Origin: Guillardia theta CCMP2712
Taxonomy: Eukaryota > Protista > Cryptophyta
NCBI RefSeq assembly: GCF_000315625.1
Contig: NW_005434669.1
Location: 1,152,499-1,216,498 of the forward strand
Reading direction: 5' to 3'
Length of the DNA: 64,000 bases
This document shows, in pieces, positions 13,891 to 26,976 of the stretch. The translations under genes were made by a program, and so were the position numbers. Under the pieces are notes generated by a model. That model ran no database searches and was not told the DNA's origin. It saw only the letters and a program-made list of their open reading frames with translations. Numbering within the stretch: the stretch's first letter is position 1; every line of letters starts with the position of its first letter.

Positions 13891-15935
13891 ATGCTGCCCA
13901 AGCTCAAGGCCGGGAAAGCGGGCGGGGGGAGGGGCGGGGCGGGGACTTCAGGAGAAGCAGCAAGGCAGGTGCACGCTTCGAGCTCGATCGACGTTGCAGC
14001 TGGTGATCGGAGCGAAGACACACGGGGCAGCAAGAAGTTTGTGGTGAAGACGATGAGGTACGAGGACATGCGGGCGTTCATGCTGCAGGCAGAAAGAGAG
14101 GTGGAGGAGACGCGAAGGGCTCTTGAAAGCAGCAAGAGGTGCATCGATGAAGCTGAAAACGCCTTGCAGCAATCCGTCCGACAATCTGCCATGTGGTTCG
14201 TCGAGAAGATGCAACAGAGCAGCAAGCCAAGTAAGCAAAACAAGAAGAAATGGGTGGCTGTGCAAGCGGCGTCCTTCGTCTTGTCTCTCTTCTTCGAGAT
14301 CAAGCGCAGGGCCGAGGAGACAACAGATGGAGTCGGGGAGGAGTCGTCGACCCCCGACATGCAGGAGGAAGCAACAGACATAGTTCGAGAATTGCTGCTG
14401 AGCGTGCAAGAAGACAAGTCGCTCGATGAGTTTCTGCTGATGCTCGCAAAGGTGATGAGCGGTTGATGGAGGTCTTGCTTGCTCACTGTGTCTTGTGCTA
14501 GACCAGAGCGGCGGCTGAGACTGAGTGGATGGTCTTGAAGGAGAGGATACGGAAAGGTCCTTTCCTTGATAGCCTCAACAGGCTGTGGAACACCATCGAC
14601 GAGTTTGAGTTTGGATACCCTCACCGGATCGAGGTGAACAAGAAGCACGTACAGGAGCTGAAGGAGTTGGTTGCCCGGTACAAGAACGAGCTCCGTGGTT
14701 CTGTCGAGAGTGTAAATCACACTCTGAGGATGGTTTTACACTCGGTGAAGATGAATGGTATTGCAGTCTCGGGGAATATCGCCTTGCCATCGCCAGAGCA
14801 TCTTTTTCAGGCAGAGTTGTTGATCTTTGATGAAGCCAAGGCAGGAAAGTGGAGCAAGACAGCAAACGAAGATGTGCAGAACTTCAAGAAGTACTTCAAC
14901 AGAGCCCTGACGAGGCTTCACGAGCTTGTCATCAACGCAGACCATGAGATGTCATACCGCACAAGAACAAACTTGAAGAAGAGGCTCGAGAACATAGAGA
15001 AAGAGAATCAGAGTTTGACAGAAGAGATCGTTCAATACAAGCAAGAAATCAAAGCTACCTATGAAAGTCAAGGAGCTGCTCTCGAGCCCCACGAGAGCTC
15101 TCACAGAAAACGGATGGACGAAGTTTCTCAGGAGAGGGAGAGGCAACAGCAGCAGCTGGATCAGGTGCTCGCTAGCAAGCGGCTTGAACTCGAATCCAAA
15201 AGGACGCGGCTGGATCAAATGAAAGAAACGCTGGCTGGCAAGAAAGCAGACTTGCGAACGATGAAGAAGCGTTCCAAGGAGACGAGTAAAGACCTGGACG
15301 AGGTCATAGCCGCTGCTTACGAGCGAGACGAGACTCTCGTCAAATGCCTTTCAATCATTACGAGCCAAGAATCACTCGAGGACATCAAAGCGTCTATGCC
15401 ATCCAAACAAAACATCAAGAATGAAATCTTCAAGTCTGTTGAGCTTCTTGACAGTGAAGTCTCTTCCCGTGAAGCAGAGTTGAAGGATGCTTCGCAGCTG
15501 ATGTACGAACAGAAGATGTGCTGTCTTAGAGTCTTCAACGACGTTTCACACCAGCCACAAGAAGCCGTCCGACAGGAGATAGAGCGTCAGCAACAGAACA
15601 AACTTGACATGGATGAGATCGGAAAGCTCATTGATGACTACATGCACCACACAGACTTCTACAGTTTGGATTCCTCAAAGCTCAACGCCTTCGTTCACCT
15701 GCACTTACCATTCGCAGCGTCTGAGGCCTGGAGAGACTTTCTGATGGCCAGGTATGATGAGATTTTCAACGACATGCAGGGCAAGGAATTGTACGTGTCT
15801 CATGATGACGAGGTGAAGGTCTTGATAGCCTCTCTTACTGACTACGGGTACTCGACGGAAGAAACGGCACAGATGTCGTATCAAGACTTGCAGAAATTAT
15901 TACAAGAGGAGCAGAGAATATCGAGAATGGAATGA
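13891..15935 (+). CDS. Coiled-coil protein of unknown function (2 exons: 13891-14451, 14502-15935)
   Basis: A 50-nt GT-AG intron joins the 191-aa and 468-aa ORFs in frame (…LAK/TRAAAETEWMV…). Long heptad-rich regions. Confidence 0.75.
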
Positions 15936-16600
15936 TCTCAGTTAACTCTAGCATCATCATGGAATCATCAAACATGTCTTGAAGCCTTGTTCACGCAACT
16001 TGGCAACCGTTGTGAGTTGCCTGGCATCTGAGCTCAGAGCCAAGTTGCTGCCAAGTACGGTTATGAGTACTAGTGACTACCGTACTAACAGTTGAAGTTA
16101 CCGTCTATCACCTTTGGGCCTCGACTCGGATGCCGGCCGGGCCCGGGCGCCCGCTGCCATAGTACGGCGAGTCCCGATCTTTTCCGATCACTCCCAGGCA
16201 TTCTGTACCATTAAACTGTGATGACTAAAAGTTATATAATGATTGTTCCCGTTTTGACCTCTTGAGGTGATGTGGGGGAATGACTGCAGCAGGGGTGGTA
16301 TGGTAAACACTCAAAAGGGGGGTAGGGGGACCCAAACAGAATCTCAGCCCCCTGCACGAGTAACCAGTACCCCAAGATTTCCGGGAAAAAGAAGGGGTAG
16401 TGACATAGGGTATCGTGTGAGCTGACCCGATATGTTCGATTTCCAGTTGCCAGTTTGAGGAGAGAAGGAGAGAGAAGGAGAGAGAAGGGAGATAAGGGAG
16501 ATAAGGAGCAAGACAAAGATACATGGGGAAATACCCTTCATTTCTTTCTTTTTCAGGCCTCCTCTCCCCCTTACTTGTATGATTCTTTCCCTCAACTAAA

Positions 16601-19600
16601 ATGATTACTAGAATGGTTACTAGAATGTTTCCTTCCCTCAACAACAAAACCGTTTTCGCACATCTTGTGTTGGCGCTGTTGGGCTTCGTACACGTTCAAG
16701 GAGATCGATGTACCGACGTCCCAACGTCCAGATGCTGCCCGGATGGCATCAAACATCTCGAGAGCAAGAACACGACCATCCCCATGCATCCTGTCGACAG
16801 AGAGGCTCTGGTGAACTTCCGACGCGCCATTGGGAAGCATGACGGGCTGCTCAACAACTGGTATATTGACGATCCGAGCTCGCATCCGTGTGACTGGTCA
16901 GGAGTGATCTGTGACTGCTGTGCGCTGTATCCAGCGGATGGGTTGGACTTCTGCGACGGCATCGACACCACCTACCAGCATGTCTACCACCTTGACTTCG
17001 GCCCTTCCAAGCCTTCGAACAAACGCCTCAATGGCTATCTGTCGCCCTATCTTGGGAATCTGACGGAGCTGAGGCTGGCGTATCTTCATGTGAATGAGTT
17101 CTCTGGAGAGATTCCCCGAGAGATGGCGAGGCTGCAGAAGCTGCAGAGGCTGGTGCTTCGTGACAACCAGCTGACGGGTCCTCTGCCGGCCGAGCTGGGC
17201 TCCATGCTCGCGCTGAAAGATCTCAACGTCGAGGTGAACAAGTTTGAAGGAGCGATACCGCTGGAATGGTGCAACCTGATAAAGTCTGTCAATAGCAAAA
17301 AGTTGCTGGACGTCAACATTGTTACACCAGCCAACAACCCAAGTCTCTGCGGCCCTGTGCCCGAGTGTCTTGTGAAGCAGGGAAAGCTGCGTACTGCCAA
17401 CGTGGTAGGAACGTTTCTACAGGTCGACGACTCGGTGGACAACCCCGGGAGGGTACAGGGAGTGTGCGACCTGACCCCGGCAGTGTGCAGGGCGGAGGAG
17501 GGGTGCGGCATCAGGTCGGAGACGGTGATCGCGTCGCTGCAGGAGTTCTCGTTCGAGTTCCCGGAGTTCTCGGACCCGGACAGCGGGATGCGGTCCTACT
17601 ACTGGGGGATAGACATGTGCGACGACGAGACCTCCTGCCACGATCGAGACGACGCCATGGCCTTCACTGCCTTGACGGCCATCTCGTACAAGACCTCGGA
17701 CGGGCTGACCATGTACCGGCAGAAGTACAAGGCCAACGGGCTCGCGCTGATCAACGGAGGGTGGTACAAGATCTTGCTGAAGGGATACAACGGGGCTGGG
17801 CCTCCTCTGTCGACGACGATATCGTCCAGGCCGTTCCTGGTGGACTCGACGCCTCCGCTGCCGTCTACTATCTATGACTCGCAGTTCTGCAAGGAGCCGA
17901 TTTTGGTTCAAGACAACGCAGTGCTGGAGGCGTGCTGGTCAGACTTCGTGGAGGCTGAGTCAAGCGTAGTGCGGTATGAGTATCGCGTGCACAAGCGCAG
18001 GAGAGACGGAGAGAGCTCCGAGGCCGTGGGCGAATGGAAGAGCGTCAACAAGACGGCGTACACAGCAAGGACCGGTCGTTATGCCGTGTCTGAGAGCGGG
18101 TACAGGCTAGAGGACGGGTGGGTCTACTTCTATGAGGTGAGAGCGACCAACGCAGCCGGGCTCAAGTCGAGCAGCTCGAGTCGAGGGGTGCTGTACTCGC
18201 CGACCAACCAACGGCTTCTGCTGGCGATCATCCTGTCCGTGATCATTCCTGTGGTGTTGCTGGGCTGCCTGGGGGGATGGGCGTACAAGCGGATGGAGCA
18301 CCACTACCAGCACGTGGAGCAGCAGGAGAGGAGGAGGAAGCATCAGATGGACAGCATGAAGGAGATCTACGACGTGCTTGTTATGAAGCCTTCGCCCTTG
18401 GTCGGGAAGCCTTGCCCGTCGTCTTTAGACGCGAGTCACGATCTGAAAATGCATCATAGTGAAAGAGTGCGTGGAGAGTGTGACATGATGGATCAGCGAG
18501 CAGAGGCTGTCTTCACAGCTGAGAACGTAACCTTCGTCATCACCGACATGGAGTCCAGCACGCTTCTAGCTGAGACCAACCCCGCCCTCTTCCGGGAGAT
18601 CCTCGAGATCCACGACGCGCTTGTGCGGCAGCTGGTGGACGAGTACTCGGGGTACGAGGTCATGTCGCAGGGCGACTCCTTCGAGCTCGCCTTCGTCGAG
18701 CCGTCTCTCGCCGTCTGCTTCTGCAACGCCCTGCAGACGCGGCTGATGAAGCACGAGTGGGACAAGCGGGTGCTGGGCCTGTCGGGGTGCGAGGAGATGT
18801 ACGACGAGCACGAGAGGCTGGTGTACCGGGGGCCGCGAGTGAGGGTGGGAGCGCACCTGGCGAGGAAGGGAAGGGACTTCACGGTGAGGATCCACGACAT
18901 CACGCGGGACATGGTGTTCGAGGGGGAGGGGTACAAGATCGCTCAGGCGATAGGGAACGGGGCGCAAGGGGGTCAGACGCTGATCTCGCAGGAGCTGTTC
19001 GAGGCCATCTCCTTCTGCTCCGGACTGTACAAGGCAGGCAACCCGATCCTGCACGAGCTGGGGGTGTACCAGGTGGGAGGAGACAGCAGCAGCGTCAAGG
19101 GGACTCAGGTCAAGCTCTACCAGCTGTCTGGACCAGTGTGGAAGCTGCCGACGGAGCCTGTGCGAGGGTTTAGCGGGAGCCTGCGAGGGCTTCACCAGGT
19201 GACGGAGGGGCGGCAGCTGCGCGTGCACCCGCTCGAGCAGTCCTTGTCGCTGGCGAGGATGAACACGACGTGCGTGTGTCTGGGGGTGGTGGGGGTGCCG
19301 GGGAGCAGGCGGGCTCTTGCTGAGGCGTGGATGAGAGAGACGGCGACGCTGGTGGCGCAGAGCTTCCGGGGGCACGTGATGGAAGGAGAGGGGGAGGAGG
19401 AGACGTTTGTGGTGTTTCCCAACCCCAAGTACGCGACTCACTTCGCCATGACCGCGCAGGTCGTCCTGCTGCACTCGACGCTGCCGTTCGAGGGGCTGCC
19501 GGACCTGTACAAGGAGGAGCACGGCATCGACGGGCAGCTGCTGTACGCGGGGCCGCGGGTGGGGATGGGGATGGTGACGTTGGAGGGGATGCTTCGGGAG

Positions 19601-20569
19601 TCAGAGGCAGCGCTGACGGAGGACCTGGAGGGTCTGATGGCGGGGGCGAGCAGGACGAGGCGACTGGCGCATGGGGGGCAGGTGGTGCTGGACGAGAAGA
19701 GCTGGAAGTACATGAGGAACATGATGCCGAGCCGCTGCGTGGGCATCGACCTGGGGGCTCACTGGCTGGGGGGCGGGGCCTCGGGGAGCGGAGAGGTGCA
19801 GAAGCTGTACGAGATGAGCCCGAGCGTGCTGGCAGGACGATGGTTCCCGTCGATCGAGTCAGAGAGGATGGTGAGCAGGGGGTACCGGGAGTCGCCGGAC
19901 CCGAAGCAGGGGATCGCGGTGATGTTCCTACGGCTCAAGGAGGCGGCGAGCGCGGGGCCGGAGGCGGAGGAGAGCTGGAGGGAGGGGCAGGAGAAGATCG
20001 GGCAGATCCTGCGACAGGCGCTGGAGGAGTACGGCGGGTACGAGTGCAAGGAGGCAGAGGCGGGGAAGTTCACGCTGGTGTTCGACGACCTGGGGATGGC
20101 CATGGCCTTCGGGCTGACGGTGCAGAAGGAGTGGGAGGCGCTGTGGGAGCCTTGGGGGAAGAGGAGGGAGGGAGAGGACGAGGGGCGGGGGAAGGAGGAG
20201 GAGCAGGGCAGGAAGTCGTCGCTGCAGGTGGGGCTGGCGTACGGGACGGAAGCGTTCAGGAAGCCGCTGGTGAGCGGGAGAGCAGACTACTTCGGGGCTC
20301 TGCCCAACCTGGCGGCGAGGATCATGTCGCAGGCGGAGGGAGGGCAGCTCCTGCTGGAGTACGAGGGGGCGATAGCGTGGATGCGGAAGGAGGGGAGGGA
20401 GCTGCCGGGGGTGGGGAGGAACGCGGTGGTGGAGGTGGACTTGAAGGGGGAGGGAGGAGGGAGGCGGAGGGTGGAGCTGAGCGTGGCGGGGGTGTACCAG
20501 CTGAAGGGGGTAGAGCGGGAGAGGGTCTTGGCAGAGCCGGTGCTGAGGCCACTGGAATGGGGACGGTGA
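16601..20569 (+). CDS. Receptor-type adenylyl cyclase copy A: signal peptide - LRRNT/LRR - FN3-like - TM - 3x class III cyclase homology domains
   Basis: Intronless 1322-aa ORF (start may be 16625). Plant-type LRR cap (DREALVNF...W...CDWSGVIC) and LxxLxLxxNxF/LxGxI/LP repeats; beta-rich FN3-like region (YFYEVRATNAAGL); TM LLLAIILSVIIPVVLLGCLGGWAY; cyclase motifs TFVITDMESST, QGDSF, GPRVRVG, GYECKE, DYFGALPNLAAR, AEGGQ. Confidence 0.9.
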   Translation: MITRMVTRMFPSLNNKTVFAHLVLALLGFVHVQGDRCTDVPTSRCCPDGIKHLESKNTTIPMHPVDREALVNFRRAIGKHDGLLNNWYIDDPSSHPCDWSGVICDCCALYPADGLDFCDGIDTTYQHVYHLDFGPSKPSNKRLNGYLSPYLGNLTELRLAYLHVNEFSGEIPREMARLQKLQRLVLRDNQLTGPLPAELGSMLALKDLNVEVNKFEGAIPLEWCNLIKSVNSKKLLDVNIVTPANNPSLCGPVPECLVKQGKLRTANVVGTFLQVDDSVDNPGRVQGVCDLTPAVCRAEEGCGIRSETVIASLQEFSFEFPEFSDPDSGMRSYYWGIDMCDDETSCHDRDDAMAFTALTAISYKTSDGLTMYRQKYKANGLALINGGWYKILLKGYNGAGPPLSTTISSRPFLVDSTPPLPSTIYDSQFCKEPILVQDNAVLEACWSDFVEAESSVVRYEYRVHKRRRDGESSEAVGEWKSVNKTAYTARTGRYAVSESGYRLEDGWVYFYEVRATNAAGLKSSSSSRGVLYSPTNQRLLLAIILSVIIPVVLLGCLGGWAYKRMEHHYQHVEQQERRRKHQMDSMKEIYDVLVMKPSPLVGKPCPSSLDASHDLKMHHSERVRGECDMMDQRAEAVFTAENVTFVITDMESSTLLAETNPALFREILEIHDALVRQLVDEYSGYEVMSQGDSFELAFVEPSLAVCFCNALQTRLMKHEWDKRVLGLSGCEEMYDEHERLVYRGPRVRVGAHLARKGRDFTVRIHDITRDMVFEGEGYKIAQAIGNGAQGGQTLISQELFEAISFCSGLYKAGNPILHELGVYQVGGDSSSVKGTQVKLYQLSGPVWKLPTEPVRGFSGSLRGLHQVTEGRQLRVHPLEQSLSLARMNTTCVCLGVVGVPGSRRALAEAWMRETATLVAQSFRGHVMEGEGEEETFVVFPNPKYATHFAMTAQVVLLHSTLPFEGLPDLYKEEHGIDGQLLYAGPRVGMGMVTLEGMLRESEAALTEDLEGLMAGASRTRRLAHGGQVVLDEKSWKYMRNMMPSRCVGIDLGAHWLGGGASGSGEVQKLYEMSPSVLAGRWFPSIESERMVSRGYRESPDPKQGIAVMFLRLKEAASAGPEAEESWREGQEKIGQILRQALEEYGGYECKEAEAGKFTLVFDDLGMAMAFGLTVQKEWEALWEPWGKRREGEDEGRGKEEEQGRKSSLQVGLAYGTEAFRKPLVSGRADYFGALPNLAARIMSQAEGGQLLLEYEGAIAWMRKEGRELPGVGRNAVVEVDLKGEGGGRRRVELSVAGVYQLKGVERERVLAEPVLRPLEWGR

Positions 20570-23500
20570 TTGAACTGAAGGCGATGGGATAGTTGACTAA
20601 GATGTCAGTCAGATGAATTTAGTATAAGAACTTGAATCATGAATCGTGACTGACCTGTGGGGCACCGTTAGGCTGGGCCGCGGGGCGGTTCAATGTTGAC
20701 CGGCCGGTCTGACTCAGTGTCAATAGGGCCCGGTCCACTTCACTGTGCAACATCCTGAGTCACCGGGCCCCGGATAGTCACTGTGACGGTGGTCGGGTTG
20801 ACTCATCCTGAGCCAGGCCCGAACCCTGGAACTTGCACGAACCACATCCCCACTATGTCCCAATCCTTTATATGGTCCACCCCAACCTGAACTGAACCCC
20901 TCAAATTCTTGCCGTTGAAGTACCTACCGGGTACTTCCGTTATATACCTGGTTTAGTACCCTTACTTCAAACACTTTGACAGACGGTCCATCTGTCTCTT
21001 GCCCAGAGTCCACCCCCTCATTCTCCCACCACCCCCACCCCCACTTCCTACGCCTCATTTGGGTTCATCAGTTCACGTGGCGAGACTCGAGCTCCTCCGC
21101 CATGAATCTCAACAAGAAGACCATCGCCGATGTCGACGTCAAGGACAAGCGCGTTCTCATGCGCGTCGACTTCAACGTCCCTCAGGACAAGTCCTCTGGT
21201 GCCATCACCAACGTCCAGCGCATCGTCGGAGCCATGCCGACCATTCAGAAGGCTCTTGACAACGGCGCCAAGGCGGTCATCCTTATGTCCCACTTGGGCC
21301 GCCCTGACGGCAAGCCGAACGCCAAGATGACCCTCAAGCCCGTCGCCGACAAGCTCGGAGAGCTCATGAACAAGCCCGTCACCTTTCTCCCTGACTGCGT
21401 CGGCCCTGAGGTCGAGGCTGCATGCGCAAACCCAGCTCATGGCTCCATCATCCTGCTTGAGAACCTTCGCTGGCACGTGGAGGAGGAGGGCAAGGGCATC
21501 GAGCATTCCGCCAGCTGCAACGGCAAGAAGTGCTCTGATGACTGCAAGCCGTTCAAGGCCACCCCTGAAGAAGTCACCAAGTTCCGCGAGTCTCTTTCCA
21601 AGCTCGGAGATGTCTACGTCAACGACGCCTTCGGCACAGCTCATCGCGCCCACTCATCCATGGTTGGCATGAAGGGCAAGATGCCTTGCGTCAGCGGTCT
21701 CCTCGTTGCCAAGGAGCTCGAGGCCTTCTCAAGCGTGCTCAACCCGGACAAGGTCAAGAGACCTCTCCTCGCCATCGTTGGAGGGGCCAAGATCTCCGAC
21801 AAGATTATGGTAATTGAGAATCTGATCGACCAGTCCGACGGAATCATCCTCTGCGGTGGCATGGCCTACACCTTCATGAAGGTCTGCTTTGGCATGTCCA
21901 TCGGCAAGAGCCTTTACGACCAGAAGGGTGAAGTCTCTTCCCTTCCTCTCCCTAACTTTCGCACACTTGTGATCTCGTTTCATTGTTGCTTTCCCTCCTC
22001 CAGTCCTCTCCGACTTCTTCTCTGTCTCCGTGCATGTTGCATGCTATTTCACCTCTTCGTCTTGCTCCTCTAGGATGATCTCTTCCTGCTGTCTCAGTTA
22101 CGCTCACGCTTCTACCAACTGAGACCTGTCTTTGCAGGAGCCGAGCTGGCCCCCAAGCTGATGGAGAAGGCTAAGACCAAGGGGATTGAGATCGTTCTGC
22201 CCTGCGACTGGGCCTGCGGCCAGGAGTTTAAGAACGATCAAGAGATCAAGTTTGTGACCAAGGAGGAGGGCATCCCCGACGGCTGGGAGGGAATGGACTG
22301 CGGGCCTGAGTCGATGAAGCTCTTCCGCGACAAGATCCTCTCCTCCAAGACCGTCGTGTGGAACGGACCAGCTGGAGTGTTCGAGTTCGACAACTTCTCC
22401 AAGGGAACCAAGGCTCTCCTCGACGCGGTCGCTGAGACAACAGCTGCTGGAAACAACGGAATCATTGGAGGAGGAGACTCTGCCACTGCTGCTGCCAAGT
22501 TCAACATGGAGGATCAGGTTTCCTTCGTGTCCACAGGCGGAGGAGCATCCTTGGAGCTGCTTGAGGGCAAGATCTTGCCAGGCATTGAGGCGTTGGATGA
22601 CAACTAAACATTCAATAAATTAATTTCAAGTGAGCAGGACGGGAATGACATAATGGTGTTGCTGATGAAACAACTTGAGAACTCAGTGTTTTGAACATTT
22701 ACCACGACCAAACGACAATCCTTGGGCAAACAGCATCGCCACCAGCAAGCGTAAGGTGACATGGAAAAAGTGACAACAAATGACTCAGGCCTTGGCTGGG
22801 AGCCGCGTGGCTGCCCCTTCAGCTTACGCCGCACTCAGAGGTCAAGGGCTGAAAGTTCAATCCACCCTCGAACAAATGTCGGGGTCTCTGAACACGCAGC
22901 ACACACGGCCCTGCGACATTCCTTCAACAAGTAACCCGTACGTCAGTCACGATTTCTTATACCAACTTCATTGCTAAACAAACTCACTGACTGACTTCAG
23001 TCACATTCCTCAGCCCGTGCTCCTACTCCTCCCCTTCCAGTGGCATCAGCACCGGCTCTGCCAAGACCCTCTCCCGCTCTACCCCCTTCAGCTGGTACAC
23101 CCCCGCCACGCTCAGCTCCACCCTCCGCCTCCCTCCTCCCTCCCCCTTCAAGTCCACCTCCACCACCGCGTTCCTCCCCACCCCCGGCAGCTCCCTCCCC
23201 TCCTTCCGCATCCACGCTATCGCCCCCTCGTACTCCAGCAGGAGCTGCCCTCCCTCCGCCTGCGACATGATCCTCGCCGCCAGGTTGGGCAGAGCCCCGA
23301 AGTAGTCTGCTCTCCCGCTCACCAGCGGCTTCCTGAACGCTTCCGTCCCGTACGCCAGCCCCACCTGCAGCGACGACTTCCTGCCCTGCTCCTCCTCCTT
23401 CCCCCGCCCCTCGTCCTCTCCCTCCCTCCTCTTCCCCCAAGGCTCCCACAGCGCCTCCCACTCCTTCTGCACCGTCAGCCCGAAGGCCATGGCCATCCCC

Positions 23501-26500
23501 AGGTCGTCGAACACCAGCGTGAACTTCCCCGCCTCCGCCTCCTTGCACTCGTACCCGCCGTACTCCTCCAGCGCCTGTCGCAGGATCTGCCCGATCTTCT
23601 CCTGCCCCTCCCTCCAGCTCTCCTCCGCCTCCGGCCCCGCGCTCGCCGCCTCCTTGAGCCGTAGGAACATCACCGCGATCCCCTGCTTCGGGTCCGGCGA
23701 CTCCCGGTACCCCCTGCTCACCATCCTCTCCGACTCGATCGACGGGAACCATCGTCCTGCCAGCACGCTCGGGCTCATCTCGTACAGCTTCTGCACCTCT
23801 CCGCTCCCCGAGGCCCCGCCCCCCAGCAAGTGAGCCCCCAGGTCGATGCCCACGCAGCGGCTCGGCATCATGTTCCTCATGTACTTCCAGCTCTTCTCGT
23901 CCAGCACCACCTGCCCCCCATGCGCCAGTCGCCTCGTCCTGCTCGCCCCCGCCATCAGACCCTCCAGGTCCTCCGTCAGCGCTGCCTCTGACTCCCGAAG
24001 CATCCCCTCCAACGTCACCATCCCCATCCCCACCCGCGGCCCCGCGTACAGCAGCTGCCCGTCGATGCCGTGCTCCTCCTTGTACAGGTCCGGCAGCCCC
24101 TCGAACGGCAGCGTCGAGTGCAGCAGGACGACCTGCGCGGTCATGGCGAAGTGAGTCGCGTACTTGGGGTTGGGAAACACCACAAACGTCTCCTCCTCCC
24201 CCTCTCCTTCCATCACGTGCCCCCGGAAGCTCTGCGCCACCAGCGTCGCCGTCTCTCTCATCCACGCCTCAGCAAGAGCCCGCCTGCTCCCCGGCACCCC
24301 CACCACCCCCAGACACACGCACGTCGTGTTCATCCTCGCCAGCGACAAGGACTGCTCGAGCGGGTGCACGCGCAGCTGCCGCCCCTCCGTCACCTGGTGA
24401 AGCCCTCGCAGGCTCCCGCTAAACCCCCGCACAGGCTCCGTCGGCAGCTTCCACACTGGTCCAGACAGCTGGTAGAGCTTGACCTGCGTCCCCTTGACGC
24501 TGCTGCTGTCTCCTCCCACCTGGTACACCCCCAGCTCGTGCAGGATCGGGTTGCCTGCCTTGTACAGTCCGGAGCAGAAGGAGATGGCCTCGAACAGCTC
24601 CTGCGAGATCAGCGTCTGACCCCCTTGCGCCCCGTTCCCTATCGCCTGAGCGATCTTGTACCCCTCCCCCTCGAACACCATGTCCCGCGTGATGTCGTGG
24701 ATCCTGACCGTGAAGTCCCTTCCCTTCCTCGCCAGGTGCTCTCCCACCCTCACTCGCGGCCCCCGGTACACCAGCCTCTCGTGCTCGTCGTACATCTCCT
24801 CGCACCCCGACAGGCCCAGCACCCGCTTGTCCCACTCGTGCTTCATCAGCCGCGTCTGCAGGGCGTTGCAGAAGCAGACGGCGAGAGACGGCTCGACGAA
24901 GGCGAGCTCGAAGGAGTCGCCCTGCGACATGACCTCGTACCCCGAGTACTCGTCCACCAGCTGCCGCACAAGCGCGTCGTGGATCTCGAGGATCTCCCGG
25001 AAGAGGGCGGGGTTGGTCTCAGCTAGAAGCGTGCTGGACTCCATGTCGGTGATGACGAAGGTTACGTTCTCAGCTGTGAAGACAGCCTCTGCTCGCTGAT
25101 CCATCAGTGATGAGGCAGTGTCTGACGTCTCGTCTCCATCCTCACTCTCTTCTTTTTCCTCACCGATGACCTCAAGACGTGGAACGACTTGTCCAGTAAT
25201 AGGCAGCGGCATAAAGGCAAGCACGTCGTAGATCTCCTTCATGCTGTCCATCTGATGCTTCCTCCTCCTCTCCTGCTGCTCCACGTGCTGGTAGTAGTGC
25301 TCCATCCGCTTGTACGCCCATCCCCCCAGGCAGCCCAGCAACACCACAGGAATGATCACGGACAGGATGATCGCCAGCAGAAGCCGTTGGTTGGTCGGCG
25401 AGTACAGCACCCCTCGACTCGAGCTGCTCGACTTGAGCCCGGCTGCGTTGGTCGCTCTCACCTCATAGAAGTAGACCCACCCGTCCTCTAGCCTGTACCC
25501 GCTCTCAGACACGGCATAACGACCGGTCCTTGCTGTGTACGCCGTCTTGTTGACGCTCTTCCATTCGCCCACGGCCTCGGAGCTTTCTCCGTCTCTCCTG
25601 CGCTTGTGCACGCGATACTCATACCGCACTACGCTTGACTCAGCCTCCACGAAGTCTGACCAGCACGCCTCCAGCACCTCGTCTACTCGTGCAGTATCCT
25701 CCTCCTTGCAGAACTGCGAGTCATAGATAGTAGACGGCAGCGGAGGCGTCGAGTCCACCAGGAACGGCCTGGACGATATCGTCGTCGACAGAGGAGGCCC
25801 AGCCCCGTTGTATCCCTTCAGCAAGATCTTGTACCACCCTCCGTTGATCAGCGCGAGCCCGTTGGCCTTGTACTGCTGCCGGTACATGGTCAGCCCGTCC
25901 GAGGTCTTGTACGAGAAGGCCGTCAAGGCAGTGAAGGCCATGGCGTCGTCTCGATCGTGGCAGGAGGTCTCGTCGTCGCACATGTCTATCCCCCAGTAGT
26001 AGGACCGCATCCCGCTGTCCGGGTCCGAGAACTCCGGGAACTCGAACGAGAACTCCTGCAGCGACGCGATCACCGTCTCCGACCTGATGCCGCACCCCTC
26101 CTCCGCCCTGCACACTGCCGGGGTCAGGTCGCACACTCCCTGTACCCTCCCGGGGTTGTCCACCGAGTCGTCGACCTGTAGAAACGTTCCTACCACATGC
26201 GCGGTACGCAGCTTTCCCTGCTTCACAAGACACTCGGGCACAGGGCCGCAGAGACTTGGGTTGTTCGCCGGATGAACAACATTGATGTCGATGAGCTTGT
26301 TGCTATTGACAGACTTTATCAGGTTGCACCATTCCAGCGGTATCGCCCCTTCAAACTTGTTGACATCAAAGTACAGGTCCTTCAGCGCGAGCATGGAGCC
26401 CAGCTCGGCCGGCAGAGGACCCGTCAGCTGGTTGTCTCGCAGTAGAAGTCTCTGCAGCTTCTGCAGCCTCGCCATCTCTCGGGGAATCTCTCCAGAGAAC

Positions 26501-26933
26501 TCATTCACATGAAGATACGCCAGCCTCAGCTCCGTCAGATTCCCAAGATAGGGCGACAGATAGCCATTGAGGCGTTTGTTCGAAGGCTTGGAAGGGCCGA
26601 AGTCAAGGTGGTAAACATGCTGGTAGGTGGTGTCGATGCCGTCGCAGAAGTCCAACCCATCCGCTGGATACAGCGCACAGCAGTCACAGATCACTCCTGA
26701 CCAGTCACACGGATGCGAGCTCGGATCGTCAATATACCAGTTGTTGAGCAGCCCGTCATGCTTCCCAATGGCACGTCGGAAATTCACCAGAGCCTCTCTG
26801 TCGACAGGATGCATGGGGATGGTCGTGTTCTTGCTCTCGAGATGTTTGATGCCATTCGGGCAGCATCTTGACGTTGGGACGTCGGTACATCGATCTCCTA
26901 GAACGTGTATGAAGCCCGACAGCGCCAACACAA
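16665..26933. repeat. ~3.9-kb inverted duplication (arms 16665-20557 and 23035-26933) enclosing PGK
   Basis: The arms are reverse complements and nearly identical except for discrete patches. Homology is essentially limited to the CDSs. Confidence 0.95.
21102..22607 (+). CDS. PGK: Phosphoglycerate kinase, probably cytosolic (exons 21102-21927, 22138-22607)
   Basis: Motifs [62 protein letters not shown]. Phase-1 GT-AG intron 21928-22137. Strong C3 codon bias. No targeting leader. Confidence 0.97.
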
Positions 26934-26976
26934 CAACAGAGAGCCAGTGTTTTGCAGGAGGTCGCGACAGGAGCAT
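23023..26976 (-). CDS. Receptor-type adenylyl cyclase copy B (same architecture as copy A)
   Basis: Intronless 1317-aa ORF, near-identical paralog of 16601..20569. Confidence 0.9.
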   Translation of the reverse strand: MLLSRPPAKHWLSVVVLALSGFIHVLGDRCTDVPTSRCCPNGIKHLESKNTTIPMHPVDREALVNFRRAIGKHDGLLNNWYIDDPSSHPCDWSGVICDCCALYPADGLDFCDGIDTTYQHVYHLDFGPSKPSNKRLNGYLSPYLGNLTELRLAYLHVNEFSGEIPREMARLQKLQRLLLRDNQLTGPLPAELGSMLALKDLYFDVNKFEGAIPLEWCNLIKSVNSNKLIDINVVHPANNPSLCGPVPECLVKQGKLRTAHVVGTFLQVDDSVDNPGRVQGVCDLTPAVCRAEEGCGIRSETVIASLQEFSFEFPEFSDPDSGMRSYYWGIDMCDDETSCHDRDDAMAFTALTAFSYKTSDGLTMYRQQYKANGLALINGGWYKILLKGYNGAGPPLSTTISSRPFLVDSTPPLPSTIYDSQFCKEEDTARVDEVLEACWSDFVEAESSVVRYEYRVHKRRRDGESSEAVGEWKSVNKTAYTARTGRYAVSESGYRLEDGWVYFYEVRATNAAGLKSSSSSRGVLYSPTNQRLLLAIILSVIIPVVLLGCLGGWAYKRMEHYYQHVEQQERRRKHQMDSMKEIYDVLAFMPLPITGQVVPRLEVIGEEKEESEDGDETSDTASSLMDQRAEAVFTAENVTFVITDMESSTLLAETNPALFREILEIHDALVRQLVDEYSGYEVMSQGDSFELAFVEPSLAVCFCNALQTRLMKHEWDKRVLGLSGCEEMYDEHERLVYRGPRVRVGEHLARKGRDFTVRIHDITRDMVFEGEGYKIAQAIGNGAQGGQTLISQELFEAISFCSGLYKAGNPILHELGVYQVGGDSSSVKGTQVKLYQLSGPVWKLPTEPVRGFSGSLRGLHQVTEGRQLRVHPLEQSLSLARMNTTCVCLGVVGVPGSRRALAEAWMRETATLVAQSFRGHVMEGEGEEETFVVFPNPKYATHFAMTAQVVLLHSTLPFEGLPDLYKEEHGIDGQLLYAGPRVGMGMVTLEGMLRESEAALTEDLEGLMAGASRTRRLAHGGQVVLDEKSWKYMRNMMPSRCVGIDLGAHLLGGGASGSGEVQKLYEMSPSVLAGRWFPSIESERMVSRGYRESPDPKQGIAVMFLRLKEAASAGPEAEESWREGQEKIGQILRQALEEYGGYECKEAEAGKFTLVFDDLGMAMAFGLTVQKEWEALWEPWGKRREGEDEGRGKEEEQGRKSSLQVGLAYGTEAFRKPLVSGRADYFGALPNLAARIMSQAEGGQLLLEYEGAIAWMRKEGRELPGVGRNAVVEVDLKGEGGGRRRVELSVAGVYQLKGVERERVLAEPVLMPLEGEE

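Follow-up and report, generated by a model that had tools for sequence, protein, structure and literature searches.

Class III nucleotide cyclases are the textbook example of enzymes whose active sites lie at a dimer interface, and the mammalian enzymes are the model for unlike halves that meet within one chain. In mammalian adenylyl cyclase, C1 supplies D396, D440 and R484, and C2 supplies K938, D1018, N1025, R1029 and K1065; in class III cyclases a Lys/Asp pair specifies adenine. Trypanosome receptor cyclases carry a periplasmic-binding-protein-like ectodomain, and fungal Cyr1 is a cytosolic or peripheral protein with intracellular leucine-rich repeats (LRRs), a PP2C domain and one complete cyclase-homology domain (CHD). 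Here we analysed a stretch of 64,000 nucleotides from the cryptophyte Guillardia theta CCMP2712 (contig NW_005434669.1, positions 1,152,499 to 1,216,498; hereafter the window, with positions counted from its first letter). An open reading frame (ORF) at 16601..20569 on the + strand encodes, with no internal stop, a 1322-aa protein with a plant-type LRR ectodomain, a single transmembrane helix and three CHDs, in which the conserved catalytic residues are divided between the first domain and the third. Judged from these sequence features, the protein is probably an adenylyl cyclase in the form of a type-I membrane receptor, its active site being composed of CHD1 and CHD3; we infer that it would be an active enzyme, specific for ATP, and that the ectodomain would control CHD1:CHD3 pairing.

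Three cyclase-homology domains and the division of catalytic residues

The C-terminal 690 aa of the protein hold three class III CHDs: CHD1 (18515..19129), CHD2 (19265..19840) and CHD3 (19892..20533), all on the + strand. Pfam Guanylate_cyc (PF00211) matched only the N-terminal half of CHD1 (aa 640-715), at 25.9 bits, above the gathering score of 21.9, and Pfam searches with separate pieces gave no match for CHD2 or CHD3. Comparison with solved structures was more telling. The N-terminal half of T. brucei GRESAG4.1 (1fx2, E 1.9e-17) aligned with aa 641-728, in CHD1, and its C-terminal half with aa 1208-1283, in CHD3; thus, the conserved halves of a normal CHD lie in two domains of this protein. 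The middle domain was recognized by a CHD profile built without any CHD2 sequence, which scored aa 919-1080 of the window protein at 55 bits. Moreover, when each of the three segments was searched separately against the homologues with phmmer, the same 1-2-3 order was repeated in dozens of proteins, and the CHD1 query cross-matched the CHD2 region of homologues, for example in a Trebouxia protein (P0001) at 2e-12.

We also obtained an AlphaFold2 (AF2) monomer model of aa 631-1322 from a shallow, 40-sequence alignment, with a mean predicted local distance difference test score (pLDDT) of 89 and a predicted template-modelling score (pTM) of 0.86. In VIA-align comparisons, CHD1 (model residues 1-235) superposed on GRESAG4.3 (1fx4) with Z 26.5 and a root-mean-square deviation (rmsd) of 2.4 Å over 212 residues, and CHD3 (model residues 470-685) matched Rv1264 with Z 19. 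Other solved relatives that were matched include Ma1120 and Rv1900c, and the closest solved relatives are active adenylyl cyclases. In CHD2 the strands and helices follow one another as usual, with one exception: a single 21-residue helix (model residues 372-392) takes the place of the beta-hairpin arm, which lies between beta4 and the helix normally bearing Asn and Arg. All three domains thus belong to class III by sequence and by fold, as a first, sequence-only reading of the window had proposed. At their N-terminal edges, the domains given there differ from ours by no more than about 30 aa, and the motifs it quoted are in place, both in CHD1 (ITDMESST at aa 646-653, EVMSQ and QGDSF within aa 686-694, YKIAQAI at aa 778-784) and in CHD3 (ECKE at aa 1148-1151, ADYFG at aa 1228-1232, NLAAR at aa 1236-1240).

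The division of the catalytic residues was followed in an alignment of the cytosolic parts of 45 homologues and the query (46 sequences), in which the query is 26-33% identical to the homologues. CHD1 keeps both metal-binding aspartates, D649 (45/46) and D692 (46/46), together with the beta4 arginine R748 (46/46), and has lost the substrate Lys/Asp and the Asn/Arg positions, where M688, V772, K779 and A783 stand at variable sites. CHD3 shows the opposite pattern. It keeps the substrate lysine K1150, found in 40 sequences and replaced by Gln in the other 6, the substrate aspartate D1229 (45/46), the transition-state residues N1236 (44/46) and R1240 (45/46), and the distal lysine K1302 (Lys or Arg in 39/46). 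At its metal positions it has R1111, where Ser, Arg or Lys occur across the family, and K1156, a lysine in 37 of the sequences. At the eight signature sites (Me1, subK, Me2, b4R, subD, N, R, K7), CHD1 has DMDRVKAG and CHD3 has RKGQDNRK. Both metal aspartates are therefore in CHD1 only, the Lys/Asp pair and the Asn/Arg pair are in CHD3 only, and no CHD is complete.

CHD2 has no conserved catalytic residue in the same alignment; its sole retained position is the structural beta4 arginine R986 (40/46), in agreement with the earlier description of this domain as degenerate. A hand alignment in which CHD2 appeared to retain a catalytic Asp and Arg was dropped: the Asp is present in 16 of the 46 sequences and the Arg in 4, and the arm is a helix in the AF2 model. 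A profile-based scan of the signature over 182 relatives described the three-CHD family as C1-degenerate-C2. Complementary residue loss in two CHDs of one chain is the hallmark of pseudo-heterodimeric (C1/C2-type) cyclases and is found here; such enzymes have exactly two CHDs per chain, and this family has three, the degenerate middle one at a conserved position.

The proposal that the catalytic residues are split between CHD1 and CHD3 thus holds for the gene and for its family. As read from the alignment, the pattern is exactly the mammalian C1 set in CHD1 and the C2 set in CHD3. The complementary residues persist although the sequences share only about 30% identity, and the best explanation would be selection on a single ATP-cyclising site composed of CHD1 and CHD3. 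More speculatively, the conserved lysine K1156 could bind a regulator in the degenerate pseudo-site opposite.

Proposed pairing of the first and third domains

How these elements may work together can be proposed as follows. The LRR ectodomain, carried on a stalk of two FN3-like modules, would sense an extracellular ligand, and a single transmembrane helix and a poorly conserved juxtamembrane linker would lead to the three tandem GRESAG4-like CHDs, two of which would be needed for catalysis. CHD1 would provide the two metal aspartates and the phosphate-binding beta4 arginine, the role of mammalian C1, and CHD3 the adenine-specifying Lys/Asp, the transition-state Asn/Arg and the distal lysine, the role of C2. 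Head-to-tail association of CHD1 and CHD3 would then create one complete site converting ATP to cyclic AMP (cAMP) and one degenerate pseudo-site. CHD2, to judge from its conservation as a degenerate domain, may be a catalytically empty, structural or regulatory spacer. The two domains could pair in the same chain or across the chains of a dimeric receptor, in which the partner might also be a paralogue encoded nearby (described below). The linker is long and differs between the paralogues, which would agree better with activation driven by proximity or dimerisation, as in the trypanosome enzymes, than with a rigid helical connection. A large sister group with two CHDs (P0073, P0098, P0103 and others) combines a first domain of the C1 type with a second of the C2 type, which has Gln in place of the Lys; complementation of unlike CHDs thus appears to be the rule in the clade.

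Several observations weigh against this mechanism. Pfam sees only half of CHD1 above threshold, the specificity lysine is Gln in 6 of the 46 family members, and the signal would have to cross a variable juxtamembrane linker. The structure models add to these points, since comparison of the AF2 monomer with the Protein Data Bank (PDB), using Foldseek and VIA-align, revealed no closed C1:C2-like dimer. The alignment to soluble adenylyl cyclase (sAC, 4clf) involved CHD2+CHD3 at an rmsd of 14.7 Å, that to AC9 (6r3q) involved CHD1+CHD3 at 27 Å, and the Foldseek template-modelling (TM) score by target was about 0.27 for the catalytic-domain chains of both. The single-chain enzymes with two CHDs that were compared (sAC 4clf, AC9 6r3q and 7pdd, AC5 8sl4) gave single-domain superpositions only, and the two-domain alignments to PDB cyclases had rmsd values of 14.7-42 Å. 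As a positive control, we modelled P0090, a natural two-CHD relative, with AF2 from a shallow, 26-sequence alignment. This model was confident (pLDDT 90.4, pTM 0.89); nonetheless its two domains did not superpose on AC9 or sAC either (rmsd 15-20 Å, TM 0.26-0.33). Since the control also fails, the comparison cannot tell an open state from a trans state.

The models therefore allow two readings: either the clade pairs its domains differently or in trans, or the monomer models show an open state. The ESM Atlas model of a chlorophyte relative has a similar compact three-domain arrangement (TM 0.52 over 429 residues); a feature-based ESM Atlas search with the full protein gave no usable match. As far as predicted structures can guide us, they lean away from a constitutive cis dimer, and on this basis inter-chain pairing or a conformational switch is just as likely as pairing in cis. 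The AlphaFold check suggested by the sequence-only reading thus gave a monomer model that did not superpose on C1-C2 of sAC or AC9. Of the single pseudo-heterodimeric cAMP site proposed in that reading, in cis or in trans, the complementary residues are borne out across the 46 sequences and the cis dimer is not supported by the AF2 monomer.

A stricter version of the composite site would have it assembled only in trans: CHD2 would hold CHD1 and CHD3 of one chain apart, and a site would form only when ligand joins two chains, CHD1 of one meeting CHD3 of the other, in a pair of identical copies or of the two paralogues. In that event the amount of cAMP would indicate that receptors have dimerised. 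The idea falls within the composite-site mechanism and specifies how the domains pair; we consider it possible, though not the likelier course. Its appeal is that the AF2 monomer is compact and confident and yet holds no C1:C2-like pair, as is also the case for the two-CHD relative P0090, and that the chlorophyte model in the ESM Atlas shares the three-domain arrangement. The long juxtamembrane linker, not conserved between the paralogues, speaks against rigid helical coupling, and the two neighbouring paralogues have diverged LRR faces. Moreover, the trypanosome receptor cyclases (1fx2, 1fx4) crystallised as monomers and need dimerisation. Against this, a monomer model cannot show trans contacts, the alignments behind both models are shallow, and the argument rests on a negative result with an uninformative control; besides, the known tandem-CHD enzymes, transmembrane adenylyl cyclases and sAC, pair in cis.

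If the CHDs did not form an active site at all, they could serve as a nucleotide-binding or protein-scaffolding module in a receptor that does not signal through cAMP. Each CHD alone is incomplete and barely detected by Pfam, the AF2 model lacks the canonical dimer, and a cyclase-like ATP-binding protein (6yii, Z 12.9) is among the structural matches, all of which would fit an inactive pseudo-cyclase. We nevertheless hold this to be improbable: all eight C1/C2-type positions are kept in complementary fashion in 46 sequences about 30% identical, while the degenerate positions elsewhere drift freely, which is hard to account for without selection for catalysis.

An active enzyme might also make a cyclic nucleotide other than cAMP (cGMP, cCMP or cUMP). 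Some relatives have Gln or Glu at the site of the specificity lysine (Glu in P0088, for instance), and bacterial cCMP/cUMP cyclases are among the fold matches (Z 15-17). For the window protein itself this seems very improbable, as it has the Lys/Asp pair (K1150, D1229), whose members are kept in 40 and 45 of the 46 sequences, and its nearest solved relatives are adenylyl cyclases. A composite adenylyl cyclase site thus stays our preferred interpretation.

The receptor gene, its ectodomain and its inverted paralogue

The gene at 16601..20569 (+) is complete and intronless according to the ORF listing and the contigs and reads of public runs. Contigs from three public runs (X1, X2 and X4), which are probably transcriptomes, their RNA status being our guess, span 16601..20569 without any splice joint. 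In run X17, which is recorded as RNA and has 3'-biased reads, depth reached about 50-60 at 20343-20676, over the 3' end of the receptor gene, with the first mate on the + strand. This pile-up extends past 20561, the end of the repeat shared with the paralogue, and is hence copy-specific, showing that the copy at 16601..20569 is transcribed. Reads of the same run at 16001-16668 probably mark the 3' end of an upstream ORF (14529-15935, 468 aa), which encodes a coiled-coil-rich protein, and not the 5' end of the receptor gene.

The full 1322-aa product has no entry in a collection of 15 billion proteins. What is public for Guillardia theta CCMP2712 is a partial model, GUITHDRAFT_48629, of 147 aa, 99% identical to parts of the query and present under two accessions, which fits the two gene copies. 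It fuses aa 645-750 directly to aa 1212-1252 of our ORF by treating 18845-20227 as an intron (1383 nt, in frame, with GT..AG ends), thereby joining the N-terminal half of CHD1 to the C-terminal half of CHD3. We regard this 147-aa chimera as an artefact of homology-guided modelling, because the skipped stretch is open and folds confidently, the ORF is continuous elsewhere and contigs cross both boundaries. Splicing of 18845-20227 to a single canonical-looking CHD, with the three domains as an unspliced artefact, would match the public model and the GT and AG at its boundaries but is hardly credible and was rejected: the stretch is an open frame with confident CHD structure in the AF2 model, the three-CHD order is kept as a continuous ORF across dozens of species, unspliced contigs of three runs extend over both of its ends with no report of a joint there, the junction links equivalent beta4 sites of CHD1 and CHD3, which is what gene modelling on a single-CHD template would produce, and the joined product would still be without the specificity lysine (M688). 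The public model for the locus should thus give way to the 1322-aa ORF.

The N-terminal half of the protein has the features of a plant-type receptor. A signal peptide (aa 1-34, 16601..16702, +), with cleavage near G34/D35, was read from the sequence by eye and is putative; the N-terminus of the paralogue differs in sequence and is equally hydrophobic. Next come an LRRNT_2 cap (aa 65-105) and some 4-5 LRRs of the plant type, closed off by a C-cap that contains Cys and reaches to about aa 250 (16793..17350, +). Pfam detected LRRNT_2 at aa 65-105 with E 8.6e-10 and LRR models (LRR_1/LRR_14) over aa 145-214. A phmmer search of the PDB with the ectodomain matched the ectodomains of plant LRR receptor kinases (GSO1, FLS2, SERK). 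For GSO1 and FLS2 the extremely small E-values reflect one block of about 80 residues matched to many repeats; SERK2, on the other hand, aligned end to end over aa 68-253 (E 2.3e-12), which indicates a short LRR part resembling that of SERK proteins.

The stalk (aa 291-537, 17471..18211, +) is predicted to consist of two FN3-like modules. Homology supports this assignment: aa 301-527 matched residues 300-560 of a Bryopsis homologue (P0014) by BLASTP with E 1e-16, and that region of P0014 has a Pfam fn3 match at E 2e-8. The FN3-like stalk of the sequence-only reading thus gains support through the Bryopsis protein and none from a direct match, as Pfam found no fn3 in the window protein, even when the stalk piece was searched separately. 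A single transmembrane helix (aa 538-562, 18212..18286, +) is the sole segment with a 19-residue Kyte-Doolittle mean above 1.6 (maximum 3.09). Together with the Pfam and PDB matches, it agrees with the single-pass, plant-type LRR receptor first suggested. The juxtamembrane segment (aa 563-638, 18287..18514, +) then leads to CHD1. No protein kinase domain was matched by Pfam at E up to 1 with the whole protein or up to 10 with the pieces. A receptor that signals through cAMP instead of phosphorylation, as had been suggested, is therefore backed as regards the LRR, transmembrane and cyclase layout and the lack of a kinase match, and its cAMP output would follow from the catalytic residues.

ORF, repeat and protein comparison revealed an inverted paralogue of 1317 aa with the same architecture at 23023..26976 on the - strand. 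The arms of the inverted repeat (16665-20561 and 23031-26933) flank a phosphoglycerate kinase gene (20976-22607), in which one short intron seems to separate two ORFs (20976-22073 and 22161-22607); the 4-kb receptor genes on either side are intronless. The cyclase part, 18486-20561 (2076 nt), was reported as 100% complementary to the other arm, with 2 aa differences in the protein alignment. Over the ectodomain the copies share about 96% identity, their differences being concentrated in the LRRs (aa 185, 209-211 and 233-242); the LRR region as such is 97% identical, and the signal peptides differ. A juxtamembrane cassette (18381-18485, aa 594-629, 36 residues, about 105 nt) is exchanged for an unrelated 111 nt in the paralogue between near-identical flanks, and contigs with either form of the cassette exist in public runs (joint 18380/18486; X1 record 4). 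GC content is 0.64 over the homogenised part and about 0.51 for the window. The GC excess and near-identity would fit ongoing, GC-biased gene conversion between the copies; an assembly artefact may also be the source of two near-identical copies.

Relatives and comparison with known systems

Full-length or nearly full-length homologues with LRRNT_2, LRRs, in part fn3, and three CHDs were found in Trebouxia, Coccomyxa, Nannochloris, Bryopsis, Ostreobium, Tetraselmis and Pyramimonas and on many metagenomic contigs, and an exhaustive HMMER scan gave 95 clusters at E <= 1e-30. The architecture is thus not unique to G. theta and is present in public green-algal protein sets, under the titles 'hypothetical', 'Guanylate cyclase' or 'putative Adenylate cyclase'. 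Some members (P0025-P0027) have a Receptor-L-domain ectodomain instead of LRRNT_2/LRR. In a quick tree, the query emerged on a long branch with metagenomic sequences, near a Pyramimonas clade, and no small clade around it was strongly supported.

The closest homologue of the same architecture, P0041 (1332 aa, 35% identical), is encoded on metagenomic contigs L001 (1957-5955) and L002 (540-4538). The genes around it all share one strand and either touch or overlap slightly, by a few bases, which suggests a very compact source genome, of a picoeukaryote or a giant virus. In the two-CHD sister family, P0073 also has p25-alpha domains. More distant relatives have four to six CHDs, mostly complete. 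In the set P0036-P0038, P0088, P0129 and P0170, some chains have five CHDs in the order complete-degenerate-complete-complete-complete (P0036 is from EukProt), and others have two or three tandem C1-degenerate-C2 modules.

A full-text literature search found no published description of receptors combining LRRs with several CHDs; its coverage is incomplete, with most subscription journals outside it. Within that coverage, and with the homologues present only as unnamed or putative entries, the architecture does not appear to be well characterised already. An algal family with a third, empty CHD between the two halves is a new layout, and it raises the question whether the extra CHD forces inter-chain pairing, so that the production of cAMP would reveal receptor dimerisation. 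In this family, moreover, an LRR ectodomain of the plant type, familiar elsewhere from receptor kinases, is coupled to a second-messenger enzyme. To our knowledge, LRR receptor kinases are scarce in chlorophytes and cryptophytes. The family therefore bears on the evolution of LRR surface receptors before or beside their fusion to kinases, and on the control of cAMP in algae. We tentatively suggest that it may be both a natural split enzyme and an ancient algal class of plant-type LRR receptors signalling via cAMP, shared by chlorophytes and a cryptophyte.

Precedents exist for pseudo-heterodimeric cyclases, for receptor-type cyclases and, in fungal Cyr1, for cyclases containing LRRs; the combination of an extracellular plant-type LRR/FN3 sensor, a single transmembrane helix and a conserved C1-pseudo-C2 triple CHD has none among these. 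The receptor adenylyl cyclases of T. brucei (ESAG4/GRESAG4) are likewise type-I single-pass receptors, whose ectodomain is large and whose class III CHD lies inside the cell. Among solved structures they come closest to the window protein both in sequence (E 1.9e-17, about 30% identity) and in fold (Z 26.5), and an extension C-terminal to the CHD is also common to both. The trypanosome enzymes, however, have one catalytically complete, homodimerising CHD per chain, whereas the Guillardia protein has three, none of them complete, below an ectodomain of LRRs and FN3-like modules. Mammalian membrane adenylyl cyclases (C1/C2) and soluble ADCY10 provide the likeness in the division of labour, as unlike CHDs share the work and leave one active site and one pseudo-site; these enzymes have two CHDs of another subclass, in 12-transmembrane or soluble proteins, whereas three are present here, and the predicted arrangement does not superpose on theirs (rmsd 15-27 Å).

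With plant LRR receptor kinases and co-receptors (SERK, FLS2, GSO1, BRI1), the protein has in common the LRRNT_2 cap, the plant-specific LRR consensus, the short SERK-like number of repeats and the single transmembrane helix. The output of the plant receptors is a kinase; in its place we find a cyclase module and an FN3-like stalk, in a cryptophyte host with chlorophyte relatives. Fungal Cyr1/CDC35 likewise has LRRs and a class III CHD in one chain, and an ESM Atlas cluster of this type was among the shape matches. Finally, the animal receptor guanylyl cyclases (GC-A, 9bcv; CHD fold Z 19.4) are also single-pass proteins with an intracellular pseudo-domain beside a catalytic CHD. They are GTP-specific, obligate homodimers with one CHD per chain, and their pseudo-domain is a kinase-homology domain, whereas the pseudo-domain of the Guillardia receptor is itself a CHD.

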